From Octopus sinensis (taxonomy: Eukaryota), in the NCBI RefSeq assembly GCF_006345805.1, contig NW_021833115.1:1-64000 (forward strand): a DNA stretch of 64,000 bases. The letters run 5' to 3'. Positions 3,178-49,741 of the stretch are shown here, piece after piece. How positions within the stretch are numbered: position 1 is the stretch's first letter; each line of letters opens with the position of its first letter. Below the pieces are notes generated by a model that saw only the letters and a program-made list of their open reading frames with translations, ran no database searches and had not been told where the DNA came from. The position numbers were made by a program, and so were the translations under genes.

Positions 3178-3856
3178 TAACAATAATAAATCTCTGAGCG
3201 AGGTATAAACAGTAACTGCTCTATAATATAAGCGGGATCAGCCATCTGAATGTGGCTAGGGACAGGGCGGGGTGGTGGGGGTGTTACTGATGCATTTAGC
3301 CCCAGGCGACTATCGACGTCACCAGAAGAGCCGACACCATCACGGTGTCCTTGCTAGCCTGCAAGGGAGATCACCGTGATGTTGTCGGCTCTTCTGGTGA
3401 CGTCGATAGTCACCTGGGGCTAAATGCATCAGTAACACCCCCACCACCCCGCCCTGTCCCTAGCCACATTCAGATGGCTGATCCCGCTTATATTATAGAG
3501 CAGTTACTATTTATACCTCGCTCAGAGATTTATTATTGTTATCGAACGGATTTTCTACGCCAGTGACTGTGGTTACTGTGAAAATCTATATATTTCTAGC
3601 CTGTAGAGGAAGTCCCTCAGCGAAGAACGGTGCTTGCCATGCGCTGACAAGAGGCAAATACCTCGAAACCGGTCCGTGTGTAGCATCCGTATCTTCGGTG
3701 AGGCTGATCTCTCTTTGCAGGCTAGCAAGGACACCGTGATGGTGTCGGCTCTTCTGGTGACGTCGATAGTCGCCTGGGGCTAAATGCATCAGTAACACCC
3801 CCACCACCCCGCCCTGTCCCTAGCCACATTCAGATGGCTGATCCCGCTTATATTAT
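3178..3856. mobile_element. Retrozyme/PLE-like element: 360-bp-period partial tandem (3372-3856) plus inverted copy (3178-3371)
   Basis: caccgtgat starts at 3372 and 3732; 3178-3348 is the reverse complement of 3372-3541; both ends abut (TA)n; contains a hammerhead. Confidence 0.7.
3638..3680 (+). ncRNA. Minimal type I hammerhead ribozyme, G8>A variant
   Basis: catgcg-CTGACAA-gagg caaata cctc-GAAA-ccgg-TC-cgtgtg; stem I 6 bp including 2 G-U pairs; palindromic stem III ACCGGT. Confidence 0.7.
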
Positions 3857-3982
3857 ATATATATATATATTGATAAATATAAGGGTAGCAAAAAAATTCT
3901 TGAAAAAATTCTCCGCTACCAGCGGTCTAGTGCTCTTTCTAGTGAGTCGAATGGCCTATCAGGGCCATTCCTTATATTGTTG

Positions 3983-4027
<45 letters not shown>

Positions 4028-4136
4028 CATTAATTAAAATCTTAGGGTAGCAAGAATATTTATCGGAAAAATTCTTAGTTACCATTGGTCTAGCGAGAAG
4101 GAAAAAATTAGTCAATAGACTATACATTATTCCGAG

Positions 4137-4340
4137 AAGAATACGGTGTACATTCAAACCCAAAAGAGATACCGAAAGAATAGGATATCTGACTCACTAG
4201 AAAGAGCAGTTAAACTCCATTTTTCAATCACTTCTGGAATTACAACAATTAGTGGTTTGGAGTTTAACTACTCTTTCTAGTGAGTCAGATATCCTATTCT
4301 TTGGGTATCTCTTTTGTGTTTGAATGTACACCGTATTCTT
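4137..4340. repeat. 83-bp inverted repeat with 38-bp spacer
   Basis: Arms 4137-4219 and 4258-4340, about 3 mismatches. Confidence 0.9.
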
Positions 4341-4355
4341 GTCTCTCTTTCTCAC

Positions 4356-4397
<42 letters not shown>

Positions 4398-4489
4398 ACT
4401 CTGCGTTCAAATTACTCCAGATCATCTTCACTTTTCATGCTTTCGGAGTGAATAAAGCAAAGTGTCAAGATCAGAAGCGTGGATTAGCT

Positions 4490-5600
4490 GAGCTGTTGGA
4501 GCGTAGAGAACTGCGGTCCACACACACGTTTTCCATCGGTGTTGCAGTTCTTGATGAAGTCTTTACCATGTTGCTCAGAAAAAGTCATCAACGGAAGATA
4601 TGACGTCATCCTGACATCACTGCGATACTGGTTTCCCAGCCACGTAGTTTCTCCTGTTGAGGACCAGATGATAGGACGATGGGACCAAATGACGAGGATA
4701 GGGTAGGTAATCAACTGATTCAAGGCCAGTCACATGCAGCAGCCATTGAAAACAAGGAATTCTATGCTGGAGCATTATCCTGATGAAACAATTCCTTATT
4801 CTTTAGATTTTCTAGCCCTTTGGTCTTGATAGCCTTTCGTAAGTGCCTCAGCAACTTGCCATAGTACTCTCCATTGATGGTGTGGCCCTTTTTAAGATAA
4901 ACACAATGCCTTTTGCATCCTCCAAAATTGACGCAATCACCTTTCCTGCAGGTGAAACGACCTTGGTCTTCTTTGCAGCAGGTGAGGCGGTGTTTTCTCA
5001 CTGCATTGATTGTCTTTTTGTCTCTTACCAAAAGCGATGAAACCAACACCCACCCTCGGTTAGGAAACGTCCAAGGAAACCAGCTGTATCTTATTTCTTT
5101 ATTGTCCACAAGGGGCCAAACATAGAGGGGACAAACGGATTAAGTCGATTACATCGACCCCAGTGCGTAACTGGTACTTATTTAATCGACCCCGAAAGGA
5201 TGAAAGGCAAAGTCGACCTCGGCGGAATTTGAACTCAGAACGTAGCGGCAGACGAAATACCGCTAAGCATTTCGCCCTGCGTGCTAACGTTTCTGCCAGC
5301 TGTATCTGCCTGAAACAATATCAGCCTGTTGCACTTTTGATCAGGTGTCAGAAGACGAGGCCCCTACCGAGCAGAAACCTTCGCCATAGACAAATTCATT
5401 ATGCAGAATATCCTCAACTCACACACGGTCTATGCTAATAGCATTGGCTATCAAATTATGGATAATTCACCTGCCATCCAGTATCATGTGGGGAATAGGG
5501 TCAGTGTTTTCGTTGGTGGCAGTTGCAGGATGTACAGACTTTGGGTCATTTTCAAGACTCTCCCTTTCCTCTTAAATTCAGCTGCTCACATTCGTACTGT
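4490..5600 (-). pseudogene. Degenerate mariner (Tc1/mariner) transposase, split by a SINE A copy
   Basis: Frame-shifted motifs AEFKR..ESLENDP, MAKVSARW, YLKKGHTINGEYY, LFHQDNAPA, GNQYRSD. Confidence 0.8.
5094..5302 (-). mobile_element. SINE family A (tail type 1) inserted in the mariner fossil
   Basis: Reverse complement of SINE A head, body and tail. Confidence 0.9.
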
Positions 5601-26206: not shown

Positions 26207-26903
26207 CAGTGCGTAACTGGTACTTATTTAATCAACCCCGAAAGGATGAAAGGCAAAATTGACCTCGGCGGAACTTGAAATCAGAACGTAGCGTCAGACG
26301 GAATACCTATTTCTTTACTACCCACAAGGGGCCAAACACAGACAGGACAAACAAGGACAGACAAATGCATGAAGTCAATTACATCGACCCCAGGGCATAA
26401 CTGGTACTTAATTTATCGACCCCGAAAGGATGAAAGGCAAAGTCGACCTCGGCGGAATTTGAACTCAGAACGTAGCAGCAGACGAAATACCTATTTCTTT
26501 ATTACTCACAAGGGGCTAAACACAGAGGGAACAAACAAGAACAGATTTAGGTATTAAGTCGATTACATCGACCCCAGTGCGTAACTGGTACTTAATTTAT
26601 CGACCCCGAAAGGATGAAAGGCAAAGTCGGCCTCGGCGGAATTTGAACTCAGAACGTAACGCAGACGAAATACCTATTTCTTTATTACCCACAAGGGGCT
26701 AAACACAGAGGGGACAAACAAGGACAGACATAGGTATTAAGTCGAATACATCGACCCCAGTGCGTAACTGGTATTTAATTTATCGACCCCGAAAGGATGA
26801 AAGGCAAAGTCGACCTCGGCGGAATTTGAACTCAGAACGTAGCGGCAGACGAAATACCGCTAAGCATTTCACCCGGCGTGCTAACGTTTCTGTCAGCTCG
26901 CCA
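26207..26903 (-). mobile_element. SINE family A tandem train (head plus 4 bodies, last one partial)
   Basis: Junctions read aaagaaatag|gtatt(t/c)cgtctg on the minus strand near 26305, 26490 and 26670. Confidence 0.9.
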
Positions 26904-30069: not shown

Positions 30070-30960
30070 GGTGTGAGAGGAAAAGTTAATTCATAGTTAG
30101 TTTCGATGTGATACAAATAGAGAGTGAGGTGGAGGAAAGAAAATAGATGTTCTATGGTTATTGAATTCATAAATCCGTTTATAGGCATAATGGTATACAT
30201 GTGTAATTATTATATAATATTATATATATATATATATTATATATATATATATATATATAAATACATTTATATATATAAATACATAAATACATTCACACAT
30301 ACATATTACACACACAATCATGTAATGTGGAGAGAGACTGAGAGAGAGAGAGAGAGTTAGAGAGAAAATACAACGTACATGAAAGTAGTTTGTATTAACT
30401 ATTAAACTCTCATATTCTCTACGAGAAATATAAAAGCGATGGTAGTTAAACAACACATCTTTCCTTCTAGATGCAGAAGAAATGGAGCTAGGTCTGACTA
30501 GACTAAGAGTTTATTAATTCCTCATCAGTGATTGGTTATCAGTTTTCTATCAAACAGAGATTAGCAGCTTATGGCTATTTACAGTAGACTCAAACCCGAA
30601 CAGGATTAAACCGGTCTGCTTAGTTTGCTTTGCGAGTGCAAGCGTTGGCAAAATGAATACATAAATTTGTAATAGCATTATAAACCAGAATAATAAATAA
30701 ATATTAATTTCAGCCATGATTTAATTCAACAGAAACCGTGAAAAATAAATGCGTTTAATGACTTCACGGTCAACAACGGCACAGTGTTAGTTCTGCTTCA
30801 GAAGAAATGGTTAATGAGATAGTCCAAGTATATAGTACTTGTGTTACATTTGATAATTTTTTTCTACTATAAAGCCACAAGGCCTGAAATTTTGGGAGCG
30901 GGGACTAGAGTTAGTCGATTAAACCAATCTCAGTGCTTAGGTGGTATTCATTTTTATCTA

Positions 30961-31024
30961 AGGCGGCGACCTGGCAGAAACGTTAGCACACCTGAAGAAA
31001 TGCGTAGCCGTATTTCGTCTGCCG
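30961..31024 (+). mobile_element. 5' head of the SINE A copy hosting the Tx1 LINE (continues at 35143-35335)
   Basis: aggcggcgacctggcagaaacgttagc...cgtatttcgtctgccg; the body resumes after the LINE. Confidence 0.9.
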
Positions 31025-31189
31025 CACATGTGTTCGTGAAGTAAGAATTGCTGTTTCGTGGTGTTAATATTGTTAACAACTGTTGTTTCTTGTTAAACTG
31101 TTGAATAACTTAACTGTTGGAGTTTTCAATTGAAAACACTTAGTGCTTGTGGTAGCACGCGTTGTTCATTCCCCTTTGGGGGGAGAAGA

Positions 31190-32400
31190 ATGTCGTCTAG
31201 CATGGAGCCTACCGTTGGAGCAGAAATACTTGTTTCTCCTGTTGAGAGGAGGAAATACATGTCCGGCGAGGAGCCAACTACAGACAAGGAAATAGGGGTT
31301 TCCCCCGCTACAAGAAGGAATAGCAGAGAGGATAATATATTGATATTTTTGGAGATGTCGTTGAGAGCTCGTCAGAACTTTCACCAGAAGAGTTTCCGAC
31401 TTTGCCAGAGAACAAAGGCATTGTGTCGAAGAGAATAATTGATGTGCCTAGCATCCCAGATAGAACCAAAAATGGAAAAAAAAGTTTTGCGTTGGCTGCG
31501 GGGTGGAACCCAGATACTGTCGACGAATAAAAGCGAAATTATGAAATACAGCAAATGATGGAAAATAAATGACAACAGTGTGTGAAAATTGAACCTCCGC
31601 AAAAGTTATTACAGGAAGAAAAAGCAAAAAACAATAATTTTCAAAACATATTGTCTACAAAATAGAAAAATTGAAAGAATGTCAGAAGAGAAAATAGAAA
31701 AGTGCTTAAAGCCAATATGGGCGACGTAGTATTTCTGAGAAGAGGAAAAAATTCGGAACGGTGGAAGTAAGGTTCACCAATAAAGAAATAGCACACAAGA
31801 ACTCAGTGGAAACGTTGGAAAACGAACGACGTGGAGTTAATACCCTATTATATGGGGATGAGGACGTCGCGAATAAAAATTACAAGGGTCCGCCAGAGGT
31901 CGAACCTATGTGGTTGTTGGCGGCAGTCCTAATCAAAGAGGTAGAAAAAATTACTCTCCTCCAGGCTACCGCTACGGAAAACCCACGCTGGGATGGTAAA
32001 AAACAATTAATCTTCTCATTCAAGCGGACCTAAAATAATTCAAACAATTCCTGAGACAATGAGGTAGGGGAGGAGAACCTCGTGGTGTTTGTTGAGGGCC
32101 GAAAACCTCGATGTTTTTTATGTGGTCAATTAGGCCACATTCGAAGGAACTGCAAGGAAAATGAAGAAGAGGAGGAAGAGGAGAAAAAAGACAAAGAGGA
32201 GAAGATAAAGAAGAAACAGATGAGAAAAAAACAAACAAACAAAAGAAAAAATACAACCAGCAACCCAGCCGAGAGCGGCGACTACTACAGAACAACGACC
32301 AAAAAAGACTGCCAGAAGAGAAAAGAAGAAGAAAAAGGCATAATAGCCGTATACACTAAAGATACTGAGCTCATGAGAGACATTCAACTATAAAGACTGT
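31190..32400 (+). pseudogene. Tx1 ORF1 (gag-like), frame-shifted
   Basis: VFVEGRKPRCFLCGQLGHIRRNC zinc knuckle at about 32085-32150, followed by a K/E-rich tail. Confidence 0.75.
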
Positions 32401-32729
32401 AAAAAAAATTGATAACCTTTCAGAGGAATTTATCAATTACGACATATATGAAGTCTCAAAATAAGACTATAGAATTCTACAAAATAAGTACAGAAAGACT
32501 GTATCTTCATTGAGATTAGATTTTAACAAGTCGATATTTCATGGATTACCAGCTCCGATCCCGCGAGAAAAGGAAAGGTGGAGATTCCCCCTCCACCTGA
32601 TAATTCTGTGTCGGTGGTGAGACGGGATTTTGACAAATCTATTTCCCAAGACCGTCCACTCCGACCCTGGATAAAAAAAGGTGGAGGGTCCCCCTCCACC
32701 GGACAATCCTTAATTAAAAAGGGTAAGTG

Positions 32730-33548
32730 ATGGCTATTCACATTGGGTGTTTTTAATGTTCATGGCCTGTTGTCAAGCTGGAAGCAAGGACGCTTTCTGA
32801 ATGACATCAGGTCGAGAAATTTGGATGTAATTGTTGTGCAACGGAAACCCGGGTGAAGGGGCCAAGAGATCTGCTCCCTCCTGAACGGCTACGAGAAATA
32901 CGTTTCTCCGAGTCGGGCGGGAGGTGGGGGGGTGGGGTGTGTGGCCCTACTAAAAAGAAACCGGGTAGCCGAGAAAAAGTTGGTTTTTTCTGACCCAGAA
33001 GGCAGGCTGGTCGTTCTCGACTTGACATTCAGTTGTGGCAAGACAATCAGGCTGGTCGCTATTTATGCACCAAACATTATTGGCCCGCAAACTGAATATT
33101 TTCGTGGCCTAGGAAAGTTCCTAGCCACGTCGCATTCACTAGTAGTGTTAGGAGACTCTAATACAATATGTGCAGCACACACAGATTGTGTTGGCTCAAA
33201 CTCGAACATGAACAGAAAATGTAACACAGGCTTTCGGGATCTGCTAAGTCAATTTCAGCTAGCAGATCCATATAGGTTGGAGCACCCGAACACTCCACAG
33301 TGGACGTGGTCAAATAGTGACGGGTCTACCAGAACATATCTAGATAGGATTTTAATTAGAGAAAAAGATAAGTCCATAGTTGAGTGGCCACAGTTTTTTC
33401 TAGTCAGCTACAGTGACCACAAGATGGTTACCTGTAAACTGACGGTAGATAAGTTGCATAGACAGGGATCTGGCTACTGGAAACTCAATACGTCCCTTTT
33501 GGCGATTGAGGAGTACAGAAAGCAGATCAAGATGTTAATACAGAGGGC
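32730..33548 (+). pseudogene. Tx1 ORF2 AP-endonuclease domain
   Basis: NVHGL, DPEGRLVVL, IYAPN, VLGDSN, TW, YLDRIL, SDH, GYWKLNTSLL. Confidence 0.9.
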
Positions 33549-33578
33549 ATTCATTTTTATCTAAGGCGGCGTACCACA

Positions 33579-34897
33579 GTGGTACGCCTACGTGAAGTAG
33601 GTAAGACTATTGAGGCTTACGAGGAGGTAGCAGGAGCAAAGATTAACCGGGAAAAGTCGGTCGGCTTGCAGCTCGGCACCTGGGTTGGCAAGTCGATGCC
33701 TTCAGACAGTGTTGTTAGGCGCTGGATGGAGGGACCGGTTAAGTTGCTGGGAGTCTGGTTTGGACCAGGCCTCCAGATAGAGAAGAACTGGACGGAGGTA
33801 TTGAGCAGGGTGGCTGCAGTAGTCAAGACTTGGTCTTGGCGGTGGCTATCCCTGAAAGGGAGGGCGGAAGTGGCCAATGTGTTTATCGCATCGGTCATTA
33901 CCTACCGCCTGACTGTCGTGCCCTGTCCGGATTCGTGGTTGATCAGGTTGGAGAGACAGCTCTTTCGCTTTTTGTGGAAGGGCAGGTCGCCACTTGTGAA
34001 ACGCTCTGTCTGCTGTCAAAAGCCTTTAAATGGAGGTTTAGGGATGCCTTGGTTAATGATGCGCAGACATGCGTTGAGGTTGAGGCACCTCTGGATTCTC
34101 CTGGATAGTGAACGGGTGTGGTCTCCGCTGGCCAGACAAATGTTCCCTGAGTTCAAGAGTTTTTGCGAACAGGAAGCCTGGTGTTCTCGTAGACCGAGGT
34201 CGAGTGAGTGGCATAAAGAGTGCCGTAAGGCCCTCTTGCTGTTCCGGCGCTCGGGCAACGCCAGCGGTGGGGGTTCCACACGGATTTTATATAGTGGGTT
34301 GGTAGAGTCTGAATGCGACGATGGCCTGGGGTCGACTCTAGGTCTCGGATTTATTCAACTGGACAGCTTGTTTCATCGTACATTCGGGTTGAGAACGTTG
34401 GACAACTTCCAAAAGTCCTTAACCTGGCAATGCTACAGAGGTGCCTTGCCCGTTTGGGATAAGCTCGCAAGACATGGTAAACGTCAGTCGCCGACCTGTC
34501 CAAGATGCGGTGGGGACAGGGAAACCGTCCCTCACGCTATTGTTCAGTGTCCGGAGATAACTGAAATGTGGGCTTATGCTGAACATCTGTTGTCCGGCGA
34601 AGGAAGAGTACGGCTGTCGACTGAGTCAATTATAAAAATTGACCCACCGGGAGTTCTAACGAACGAAGGTAAGAATTGTTTTCTCACGGTGTAGCAATAG
34701 CAAAAGAGGCTGTATGGAATACTAGGATAAAAGGAATTAAGACAGGCAACTTTATCTCTGGTGACAATTTACGATCCTTTTTTCTTTTCATTTGAAAAGG
34801 AAACTGTGGCTGGAGAAGAGGTGTCTGTCAGAGTGTACGTTCCAAAAGAGATGGAAGTATGTTGCACGAGTGTTGTGCGTGCAAGGAACCGTGTGAA
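33579..34897 (+). pseudogene. Tx1 ORF2 C-terminal part (post-RT thumb and zinc finger)
   Basis: GAKINREKS, KLLGVWFG, LSLKGRAEV, GGLGMP, CPRCG..ETVPHAIVQC. Confidence 0.9.
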
Positions 34898-35481
34898 TAG
34901 ACGAGGAAAAAAAAAAAAGGAAAAATAAAAAGGTATCAGCGGTAGATCGGGGCTTGTGGGATCGGAGCGTAACTTGATCATCGCTTCATTTGTATTGTTT
35001 TTGTACTGTGTATTCCATTCGATTTTTATGTATTGTATTTTATTTTTGATGTCACATTTATGTAAAATCATATCGATTCACTGATCCCATCAGTTGTACT
35101 GTCCATATCTATGTTTGGCCCCCGGTGGGCAATAAAGAAATTCGTATTTCGTCTGCCGTTACGTTCTGAGTTCAAATTCTACCGAGGTCGACTTTGCCTT
35201 TCATCCTTCCGGGGGTCGATTAAATAAGTACCAGTTACGCACTGGGGGTTGATGTAATCAACTTAATACCTATCTCTGTCCTTGTTTGTCCCCTCTATGT
35301 TTAGCCCCTTGTGGGTAATAAAGAAATAGGTATTTATTTTATCTACACCAGAAGGATAAAAGGCAATGTCAACTCGGCGGAGTTTGAACTCAGAACGTAA
35401 AGACGGAAGGAAGGCTGCTAAGCATTTTGTTCGGCGTATCAATGATTCTGACAGCTCACAGCTTTTGCTATACTTAATAAA

Positions 35482-35890
35482 TCTCTATTCTAAGGCGGCG
35501 AACGGGCAGAAACGTTAGCACGCCGGGTGAAATGCTTAGCAGTATTTCGTCTGCCGCTACGATCTGAGTTCAAATTCCACCGAGGTCGACTTTGCCTGTC
35601 ATCCTTTCGGGGTCGATTAAATAAGTACCAGTTACGCACTGGGGTCGATATAATCGACTTAATCCGTTTGTCTGTCCTTGTTTGTACCCTCTGTATTTAG
35701 CACCTTGTGGGTAGTAAAGAAATAGGTATTTCGTTTCCGTTACGTTCTGATTTCAAATTCCACCGAAGTCGATTTTACCTGTCATCCTTTCGGTGTCGAT
35801 AAATTAAGCACCGGTTGCATGCTGGGGACTATCATATCGATTGGTCTCCTCCCCCAAAATTTCGGGCCTTGTGCCTAGAGTAGAAAAGAA
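35482..35890 (+). mobile_element. SINE A dimer: tail-1 body in front of a tail-2 host body
   Basis: Head, body, tail 1, then gtatttcgtttccg, body and tail 2 (ctcccccaaaatttcgggccttgtgcctagag). Confidence 0.85.
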
Positions 35891-46270: not shown

Positions 46271-46800
46271 AGTCGATCATATTTTAGAGGGCAGAGGTAA
46301 GCAGATAACTAAGAAAACAAGTACAAAAAAAAATTTGGAAGGAGATGTAAACAGAAAATTTCAATAAAGAAACAAAATAAATAAATAAATGCAATCCATC
46401 ATCAAAATCTAAAAATAAACTGCAACTGGTTATCTGACCTCGTGACCTTTAATATTCATAAAATCATGTTGAGTTCTATTAACATTTCACTGTTTCAACT
46501 TCTTGGTCATTGTATTACAAAAGAAAGCGTTGAGGAGATTTTCCAATATAGCATTCATTGATAAAAAATATATATTATTATACTGAAAATATTATTCTGG
46601 CGATTTATTTTTTTATTATTATTTAGATTATTGGATTAACATATTGGCAAGATTGACCGTCTGTTCATTCTTTGGTAAAGAAAATCGGGTAGATTTCTTA
46701 TTTTTTCCTTGCGGCTATGGTGAAGATAGTCATAAGGTGAACGCGGATGAAAAAAACGTTTGACAGCCTTTATAAGATTGTTTGAATATCATTTGAAGTT

Positions 46801-47785
46801 AGCGGTATTTCGTCTGCCGTTACGTTCTGAGTTCAAATTCCGCCGAGGTCGACTTTGCCTTTCATCCTTCCGGGGTCGACTAAATAAGTACCAGTTACGC
46901 ACTGGGGTCGATGTAATCGACTTAATCTGTTTGTGTGTCCTTGCTTGTCCCTTCTGTATTTAGCCCCTGGTGTATAGTAAAGAAATAGGTATTTCGTCTG
47001 CCGTTACGTTCTGAGTTCAAATTCCGCCGAGGCTGACTTTACCTTTCATCCTTTCGGGGTCGATAAATTAAATACCAGTTACGCACTCGAGTCGATATAA
47101 TTGACTTAATCCCTTTGTGTGTCCTTGTTTGTCCCTTCTGTGTTTAGCCCCTTGTGGGTAGTAAAGAAATAGGTATCTCGTCTGCCGTTACGTTCTGAGT
47201 TCAAATTCCACCGAAGTCGACTTTGCCTTTCATCCTTTCGGGGTCGATTAAATAAGTACCAGTTACGCACTGGGGTCGATGTAATCGACTTAATCTGTTT
47301 GTCTGTCCTTGTTTGTCCCTTCTGTGTTTAGCCCCTGGTGTATAGTAAAGAAATAGGTATTTCGTCTGCCGTTACGTTCTGAGTTCAAATTCCGCCGAGG
47401 CCGACTTTGCCTTTCATCCTTTCGGGGTCGATAAATTAAATACCAGCTACGCACTCGAGTCGATATAATCGACTTAATCCCTTTGTGTGTCCTTGTTTGT
47501 CCCTTCTGTGTTTAGCCCCTGTGGGTAGTAAAGAAATAGGTATCTCGTCTGCCGTTACGTTCTGAGTTAAAATTCCGCCGAGGTTTACTTTGCCTTTCAT
47601 CCATCCTTTCGGAGTCGATAAATTAAGTACCAGTTACGCACTGGGGTCGATATAATCGACTTAATCCGTTTATCTGTCCTTGTTTGTCCTCTCTGTGTTT
47701 AGGGTTAGTTCCGCACTGGCGTAGACCTCAACGACTGGTCCCCTCCCCCAAAATTTCGGATCTTGTGCCTAGAGTAGAAAAGAAA
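46801..47785 (+). mobile_element. SINE A tandem train, 5 bodies at 184-bp period, ending in tail 2
   Basis: gtat(t/c)tcgtctgccg at 46805, 46989, 47173, 47357 and 47540. Confidence 0.92.
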
Positions 47786-49073: not shown

Positions 49074-49275
49074 GTATCAAATTTTGTCACAATTCTTGAA
49101 ATTTTGGGAGAGAAAAGCTTGTTTACCAGCCACATGGTTCCGGGTTCAGTCCCACTGCTTGGCACCTTGGGCAATTGTCTTCTACTATAGCCTCAGGCCG
49201 ACCAAAATTTTATGAGTGGATTTGGTAGACGGAAACTGAAAGAAGGCCGACATATGTGTGTGCGTGTATTGAAAC

Positions 49276-49741
49276 GACCTCGACGGAATTTGAACTCAGA
49301 ACGTCAAGGCATACGAAATACCTATTTCTTTACTACCCACAAGGGGCTAAACATAGAGGGGAACAAACAAGGACAGACATAGGTATTAAGTCGATTACAT
49401 CGACCCCAGTGCGTAACTGGTACTTAATTTATCGACCCCGAAAGGATGAAAGGTAAAGTCGACCTCGGCGGAATTTGAACTCAGAACGTAACGGCAGAGG
49501 AAATACCTATTTCTTTATTACCCACAAGGGGCTAAACATAGAGGGGGACAAACAAGGTCAAACATAGGTATTAAATCGATTACATCGACCCCTGTACTTA
49601 ACTGGTACTTAATTCATCGACCCCGAAAGGATGAAAGGTAAAGTCGACCTCGGCGGAATTTGAACTCAGAACGTAACGGCAGACGAAATACTGCTAAGCA
49701 TTTCGCCCGGCGTGCTAACGATTCTGCCAGCTCGCCGCCTT
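49276..49741 (-). mobile_element. SINE A tandem train (head plus 2 full bodies and 1 partial)
   Basis: Minus-strand junctions aaagaaatag|gtatttc near 49320 and 49505. Confidence 0.9.

Follow-up and report, generated by a model that had tools for sequence, protein, structure and literature searches.

Target-specific long interspersed elements (LINEs) are usually explained as elements that avoid harm to the host by using multicopy genes or other transposons as insertion sites. The window analysed here is a stretch of 64,000 nucleotides from Octopus sinensis (NCBI RefSeq assembly GCF_006345805.1, contig NW_021833115.1, positions 1 to 64,000 of the forward strand), and it contains an L1/Tx1-like LINE that lies inside a short interspersed element (SINE), here named SINE A, with which it has its 3' tail in common. 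It is highly probable, in our assessment, that this young site-specific LINE targets SINE A, that SINE A is, or was, mobilised in trans by the same LINE lineage, and that the pair is self-reinforcing.

The closest precedent is found in crocodilians, where SINEU and the Tx1-Mar LINEs have the same preference for Mariner-N4_AMi, which was argued to be evidence of mobilisation (Kojima 2015, PMC4494074). As in octopus, a target-specific LINE group and a SINE have a common insertion preference for one transposable element. Octopus differs in the location of the target inside the partner SINE, the nucleotide-precise site, and the young family with intact copies: the crocodilian target is a third party, a DNA transposon with insertions in two regions, and the crocodilian elements are old (85-91% identity), whereas the octopus LINE is <1% diverged and the octopus pair has a clear common 3' tail. 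The classical Tx1-group elements include Tx1L in Tx1D (piggyBac), Keno in U2 small nuclear RNA genes, and Kibi/Koshi in microsatellites (PMC4494074; Kojima & Fujiwara 2004; Christensen et al. 2000). These are likewise L1-group LINEs with an apurinic/apyrimidinic endonuclease (APE), inserted in one multicopy sequence in one orientation with precise junctions and possible tandem copies, but none of their targets is a SINE with the tail of the LINE, and the octopus LINE is placed only at the level of the L1 superfamily.

The eel pair UnaL2/UnaSINE1, of the stringent type (Kajikawa & Okada 2002; survey PMC3747384), also has a specific common 3' end, which is not poly(A) and has a small predicted hairpin, but pairs of this type show no strong sequence specificity on insertion, and their LINE does not use the SINE as its target. 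The R1/R2-type LINEs of ribosomal DNA and their non-autonomous derivatives likewise use a multicopy safe haven, and a few bases at their 5' junctions may stem from the co-transcribed target; R2 differs in its restriction-like endonuclease and its host-gene target, whereas the octopus haven is a parasite multiplied by the same machinery. Published octopus repeat annotations include recently active 'L1-Tx1' families (PMC13282606). No octopus LINE inserted in a SINE and no LINE targeting its partner SINE was found described in the full-text literature, a coverage that leaves out Repbase Reports and much subscription literature.

Insertion site of the LINE in SINE A

The 16-bp sequence CGTATTTCGTCTGCCG at 31009-31024 was found again at 35143-35158, and the two copies enclose an insert of 4,118 bp (31025-35142); the positions reported for this duplication inside SINE A in a preliminary description of the window were exact. 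With the insert removed, 30960-31024 corresponded to positions 1-65 and 35143-35328 to positions 50-233 of the SINE consensus (blastn), and the flanks of the LINE joined as a single unbroken SINE with an overlap of 16 bp. The features of the locus and of an adjacent comparator are as follows.

30943-30959, + strand: 5' copy of the host SINE's own duplication, GGTATTCATTTTTATCT, which matches GGTATTTATTTTATCT at 35329-35344 and begins with GGTATT like the canonical internal site
30960-31024, + strand: 5' part of the host SINE A (consensus 1-65; blastn 91% identity), ending with the 5' copy of the LINE duplication
31009-31024, + strand: 5' copy of the 16-bp target-site duplication, with the same junction in 20/20 other full-length copies
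31025-35142, + strand: L1/Tx1-like LINE, dead and internally deleted (4,118 bp vs ~5,360 bp in intact copies; Pfam CCHC, Exo_endo_phos and zf-RVT)
31190-32714, + strand: remnant of open reading frame (ORF) 1 with a CCHC zinc knuckle, carrying frameshifts and stops (the intact 509-aa ORF1 of copy L039 has zf-CCHC)
32730-33551, + strand: N-terminal part of ORF2, APE-type endonuclease (PF03372, E = 6e-07 in the window copy and 2e-10 in an intact copy)
33552-33572, + strand: filler of ~21 nt at the deletion junction, a duplicate of window positions 30949-30968 that stands in for 1,258 bp of the reverse-transcriptase core
33573-34886, + strand: C-terminal part of ORF2, reverse transcriptase end and zf-RVT (PF13966, E = 6e-08; 99.4% to intact copies)
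35095-35142, + strand: LINE 3' tail common to SINE A (...CTATGTTTGGCCCCCGGTGGGCAATAAAGAAATT), without poly(A) (local alignment 37/48, co-terminal)
35143-35158, + strand: 3' copy of the 16-bp target-site duplication, the identical string
35143-35328, + strand: 3' part of the host SINE A (consensus 50-233; blastn 92% identity), with the SINE tail at ~35281-35328
35329-35344, + strand: 3' copy of the host SINE's own duplication, paired with 30943-30959
35492-35724, + strand: comparator, an uninterrupted SINE A with the target unoccupied, its tail followed directly by a second unit
35726-35840, + strand: second unit, starting at the target, adjoining the SINE A at 35492-35724 in a junction of SINE tail to target

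Copies of the LINE were collected from the 2.72-Gb genome, to which all genome counts refer. The last 163 bp had at least 40 identical copies, the exact terminal 26-mer occurred 137 times, and the exact first 20-mer occurred 87 times. In all 30 fetched 3' junctions, ...AATAAAGAAATT was joined to [C/G]GTATTTCGTCTGCCG and then to the SINE 3' half; these SINE halves varied in substitutions from locus to locus, and the adjoining 163 bp of LINE were identical. Genome-wide, NGTATTT directly followed 126 of the 137 exact LINE tails. Eight of the tails lacking it were read individually: four were at mutated copies of the SINE target, one was at the target-like GATATTAAAATT in non-SINE DNA, two were at GGTATTGC[A/G]TCTGTG, a target-like sequence (GGTATTGCGTCTGTG twice) at the start of another LINE-like family, and one was a tandem junction with the 5' end of an 82%-identical related LINE. 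The off-target sites started with GATATT or GGTATT.

On the other side, the LINE 5' end CACATGTGTTCG directly followed the SINE 5' half in 20/20 full-length copies and in the window copy. The DNA outside the host SINE was unrelated between the loci of the 20 extended copies, and the first duplicated base was equal on both sides in 21/21 loci (C 16, G 5), which shows that the target-site duplications are genuine and arose at independent SINE copies. The LINE and the SINE had the same orientation in every case read. The LINE thus inserts almost only at one 16-base site inside SINE A. The proposal that SINE A is its target, made earlier from the window alone, gained genome-scale support, with 20/20 extended copies in different SINE copies and 30/30 fetched 3' junctions at the target in a SINE.

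The exact 15-mer target GTATTTCGTCTGCCG occurred 72,975 times in the genome, and the reversed pattern, used as a control, occurred twice. At the first duplicated position, a sample of unoccupied targets had A6/C6/G13/T1 vs C59/G40/T1/A0 in occupied ones; insertion discriminates at the single-base level. The duplication had been described as lying between the A-box and the B-box of the SINE. By eye, an A-box-like motif (TTAGCACGCCGGG, consensus ~24-34) and a B-box-like motif (GAGTTCAAATTCC, ~76-86) do flank the target, but the head was not recognised as a transfer RNA (tRNA): ARAGORN found none in the window or the SINE consensus at normal thresholds, and the Rfam tRNA model gave no match at E <= 10 in the SINE head. 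An interpretation of the target as the anticodon arm of tRNA-Arg was dropped, as neither tool gave anything usable.

All 20 copies that were extended upstream proved full length (5,322-5,362 bp), with a mean pairwise divergence of 0.57% and a distance of 0.06-0.7% from their consensus, and three sub-lineages were visible among them. Both ORF1 and ORF2 were open in at least 2 of the 20. ORF1 has 520 aa from stop to stop (509 aa from the first Met) and a CCHC motif; ORF2 has at least 1,134 aa (1,133 from the first Met) and in the intact copy L039 carries, in order, Exo_endo_phos (2e-10), RVT_1 (3.5e-29), and zf-RVT (2e-07). The same 3' junction and appropriate duplications were present in L009, a copy truncated at its 5' end, and in L020, which has a different deletion. 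The best solved-structure match of ORF2 was human L1 ORF2p (E = 1.9e-64, residues 5-867), and R2 proteins matched at ~1e-20 in the reverse-transcriptase region only, a coarse comparison given the few LINE clades in the Protein Data Bank. The nearest named relative in the protein-collection search was from Argonauta hians, with 62% identity in the reverse-transcriptase region, and no Tx1 reference element was among the matches of the LINE protein in this large collection. On these sequence grounds, the LINE is a very recent member of the L1 superfamily and is probably still active. It appears to behave like Tx1 elements and is called L1/Tx1-like here, its affinity being demonstrated at the level of the superfamily only.

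Related families were met at some of the same junctions. At L058 (C14:38245167), the LINE is followed by CGTATT and then by the 5' end of the 82%-identical LINE, giving tandem LINEs at one site. At L056 and L057 (C7:61841923 and C7:70733314), the GGTATTGC site occupied by the LINE lies right at the start of a third LINE-like family with a similar ORF1 start. Several related LINE families may carry or use target-like sequence.

The common 3' tail and the SINE as a probable passenger

The LINE and SINE tails, as quoted, had 4/32 differences. Their local alignment spanned 48 columns with 37 identities and reached the 3' terminus of both elements; its score of 25 lay ~11 standard deviations above that of shuffled controls (9.8 +/- 1.4, maximum 17, 2,000 shuffles), and the tail match noticed in the preliminary description therefore survived a proper alignment. 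Both tails had the same predicted hairpin shape at the 3' end, with a folding energy no better than that of shuffles, which is no evidence for a hairpin. At C6:39757794 (-), a LINE-like upstream sequence CATATCTATGTTT was followed by a SINE-type tail AGCCCCTTGTGGGCAATAAAG; this may represent an older form of the LINE, or a form of the SINE, bridging both tails.

The SINE tail was also found joined to the LINE target, at exactly the nucleotide where the LINE tail is joined. The junction of AAAGAAATA with GGTATTTCGTCTGCCG occurred 16,443 times, corresponding to 22.5% of the exact targets, and in 255 kb of sampled sequence 33/56 SINE tails were followed by the target. Directly before the target, only the SINE's own head, a SINE tail, or a LINE tail was found. 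At L031, a SINE with a slight truncation lies nested in the target, and its matching 5' junction was seen as well. Non-nested SINE copies had duplications that started with a related motif, (G)RTAT, in the forms GGTATT, GATATT, CATATC, GTATAT, or ATATAT; the window host SINE has GGTATT(C)ATTTTTATCT, and other SINEs have GATATTCCC, CATATCGTC, GTATATGTA, and ATATATTGG. These starts are similar to the beginning of the canonical site and also to the off-target sites of the LINE. The SINE tail on the same nick site, together with the related (G)RTAT sites, argues that the SINE is, or was, mobilised in trans by the LINE lineage.

A comparison with Argonauta hians was made at a single locus (L065; BAAFZT010000001.1, 4745-8650 and 9620-11309). 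There, a relative of the LINE (61% nucleotide identity) ends in ...GGCCCTTGTGGCTAATAAAGAAATC, and four neighbouring SINEs with a different head end in ...GGCCCTTGTGGCTAATAGAGAAATC; LINE and SINEs are all followed by TAT.... The homologous tail of the Argonauta LINE and at least four SINEs reads ...GGCCCTTGTGGCTAATA[A/G]AGAAATC. The Argonauta SINE is without GTATTTCGTCTGCCG, and the LINE copy lies outside any SINE-internal site. The tail partnership thus looks older than the genus, and the SINE-internal target may, on this one locus, be a later, lineage-specific development. The earlier claim that the LINE mobilises SINE A has gained support beyond the tail, from the common target junction, the common motif, and the Argonauta tails; the partner-and-target loop appears well supported, and mobilisation itself is what we infer from these observations.

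Proposed mechanism and competing explanations

Judging from the junctions, the endonuclease would nick the bottom strand just 5' of [C/G]GTATTTCGTCTGCCG in SINE A, and the nick would prime reverse transcription of an RNA ending in ...AAUAAAGAAAUU. The reverse transcriptase would recognise the ~48-nt tail common to both elements. The top strand would be cut 13-16 bp downstream, giving rise to the duplication, and the 5' end would then be joined. Every new SINE copy would be an added landing site, where a LINE of 5 kb does little harm, and the arrangement would presumably benefit either element.

Several observations weigh against this explanation. The LINE tail does not vary between copies, and 4/32 of its positions are unlike those of the majority SINE tail; a SINE subfamily carrying the exact tail of the LINE was looked for and none was found. 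SINE copies lie ~3-15% from a rough consensus of eight copies, whereas LINE copies lie within 0.06-0.7% of theirs, which means that most SINE amplification predates the present LINE subfamily; an ancestral LINE lineage, for example the 82% relative at the same site, probably did most of the spreading. SINEs are also found at thousands of non-SINE sites with the short motif alone in common, which suggests that the choice of site was less strict at that time or is less strict for the SINE. The first position is G in nearly all nested SINE junctions, whereas C is the base preferred by the LINE. Finally, the units within the tandem SINE arrays described below have an identity of 0.94 (up to 0.99) vs 0.90 between arrays, which indicates that many junctions of tail to target were copied locally and are not independent insertions.

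Much of this would be expected if SINE A had been spread by another, older, and less selective LINE, with the present LINE using an existing repeat as a safe harbour without an ongoing loop. The age gap (~0.6% for the LINE vs several percent for the SINE), the tail differences, and the short motif at non-SINE insertions would fit this explanation, as would the existence of related LINE families, one of them at the same site with 82% identity and a third whose 5' end resembles the target, and the position of the Argonauta relative outside a SINE-internal site. We nevertheless regard it as unlikely, given that the SINE tail lies on the same target nucleotide as the LINE tail in 16,443 junctions, that the older relative at L058 is at the same target, and that the tail partnership was kept in two octopod lineages. 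The common target nucleotide, the L058 relative, and the conserved tail partnership point to one evolving LINE lineage and not to an unrelated helper.

The 5' junctions bear on whether the site is read by nucleic-acid homology, in which case LINE transcripts carrying flanking SINE sequence, through read-through or an upstream start, would anneal to SINEs. The 5' duplication copy ended in TCG in 31/65 full-length junctions (31 T : 34 C), so that about half of the full-length copies had ...CTGTCG joined to CACATG, whereas the 3' copy was almost always CTGCCG (CCG in 18/21). The T/C state followed the LINE sub-lineage (8T:1C in the older and intermediate, 3T:8C in the youngest), and a few upstream bases are therefore probably carried with the LINE RNA. 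The RNA probably starts ~3 nt upstream of the apparent boundary, and the true target-site duplication may be 13 bp. Beyond these 3 nt, however, the SINE halves on both sides were diverged and locus-specific, the off-target sites resembled just the 13-15 nt at the nick, the length and position of the duplication were fixed, and a single base at the nick was discriminated, A never being used. Homology as the guide is thus quite improbable, and we infer from the junction sequences that the endonuclease reads the site. The possibility that the LINE carried the entire upstream SINE half along by transduction was rejected, as the 5' halves were as diverged as the 3' halves (~0.80 ungapped identity each).

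It is very improbable that the common tail is secondary, that is, that the LINE took the SINE 3' end by template switching without any mobilisation in trans. Template switching does occur in the family, as the 21-nt filler taken from the window copy's own upstream flank suggests, and each insertion puts the LINE beside a SINE. The tail is, however, at the extreme 3' end of the LINE, and the target and ~180 bp of SINE separate it from the SINE tail, so that capture would need a precise internal jump; the Argonauta LINE relative and SINEs have the same tail with the LINE copy outside a SINE, and the SINE tails on the same nick site would be left unexplained. A composite SINE-LINE-SINE unit spread by segmental duplication, or an assembly artefact, for which the small unplaced contig of the window (C9586) and the many small indels of its LINE copy could be cited, has virtually no probability and is refuted by the spread of LINE copies over at least 25 chromosome-scale contigs with unrelated outer flanks, differing host SINE mutations, and a near-identical LINE.

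If the LINE lands in the very SINE that depends on it, the same machinery would determine how many safe sites there are (~73,000 exact copies), which would alter the view of coevolution between LINE, SINE, and host. This offers a possible explanation for octopus genomes in which SINEs make up >10% of the genome and short SINE-derived tandem arrays are very many. The system would also provide an endonuclease and a reverse transcriptase of natural origin that use a defined 16-bp target, ~140 near-identical recent insertions, and intact copies, with which one could test directly what determines APE-endonuclease specificity and 3'-tail recognition. Judging from the Argonauta comparison, the tail partnership would be old and the SINE-internal target a later addition, and the evolution of specificity would be datable across octopods.

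Tandem SINE arrays and the window copy

Each SINE array has one full SINE and, after it, n units of consensus 51-233 that begin at the LINE target and repeat every ~184 bp. The arrays of SINE 3' units in the window are the following.

1365-1764, + strand: SINE 3'-unit array
26207-26902, - strand: SINE 3'-unit array
35492-35840, + strand: SINE 3'-unit array, the comparator and second unit listed above
46799-47702, + strand: SINE 3'-unit array in which two unit variants alternate as a two-unit higher-order repeat
49275-49741, - strand: SINE 3'-unit array

Some arrays showed such a two-unit periodicity, and at least one entire array (L061) was bounded by a single duplication. During insertion of a SINE complementary DNA (cDNA) at a SINE target, the cut top strand could pair at the homologous 15 nt and not at the cDNA end; exactly one unit, from target to tail, would then be added, and the head would not be duplicated. 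If this is true, retrotransposition would be a way in which satellite-like arrays form. Head duplications were rare, which fits the cDNA-pairing model and unequal exchange after a founding event equally well. An origin of the arrays purely by independent nested insertions was rejected, as units had private mutations in common and identity was higher within arrays. We propose only tentatively that LINE and SINE form a closed positive-feedback loop in which the site-specific machinery also builds the ~184-bp arrays and the LINE has evolved specificity for its own parasite. A second recurrent junction was seen at L040, L045, L047, L062, and L063 (for example L062 668-669), where a tail ending in ...AATAAAGAAATA was joined to SINE position 17 (AGAAACGTTAGC...), with units of ~217 bp. 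Microhomology between AAGAAA and CAGAAA could explain this junction, as could a second point at which breaks are preferred.

The window copy of the LINE is defective and inactive, which had been missed in the preliminary description. Relative to the intact copy L039, it retains positions 1-2523 (98.0% identity, with many small indels) and 3782-5360 (99.4%); its ORF1 is broken, and the 1,258 bp of reverse-transcriptase core are lost. The filler CATTTTTATCTAAGGCGGCG(T) at the deletion junction consists of host flank and the first 9 nt of the host SINE, from 40-60 bp upstream of the insertion point, with an ATT microhomology at its left edge, and has the appearance of a template switch that took place at integration or in repair. 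An older SINE relative in reverse orientation (window 35329-35465 (-) and ~30900-30942; 78% identity to consensus 1-138) in turn contains the host SINE, whose duplication falls in the reverse complement of the GATAAATTAAGTACC region of that older SINE. Measured against the intact copy, the 5' part of the window LINE (31025-33551) had 35 gap openings, many of them in the A-rich ORF1, and the 3' part had 3; given the small unplaced contig, some of these indels may be assembly errors and not mutations.

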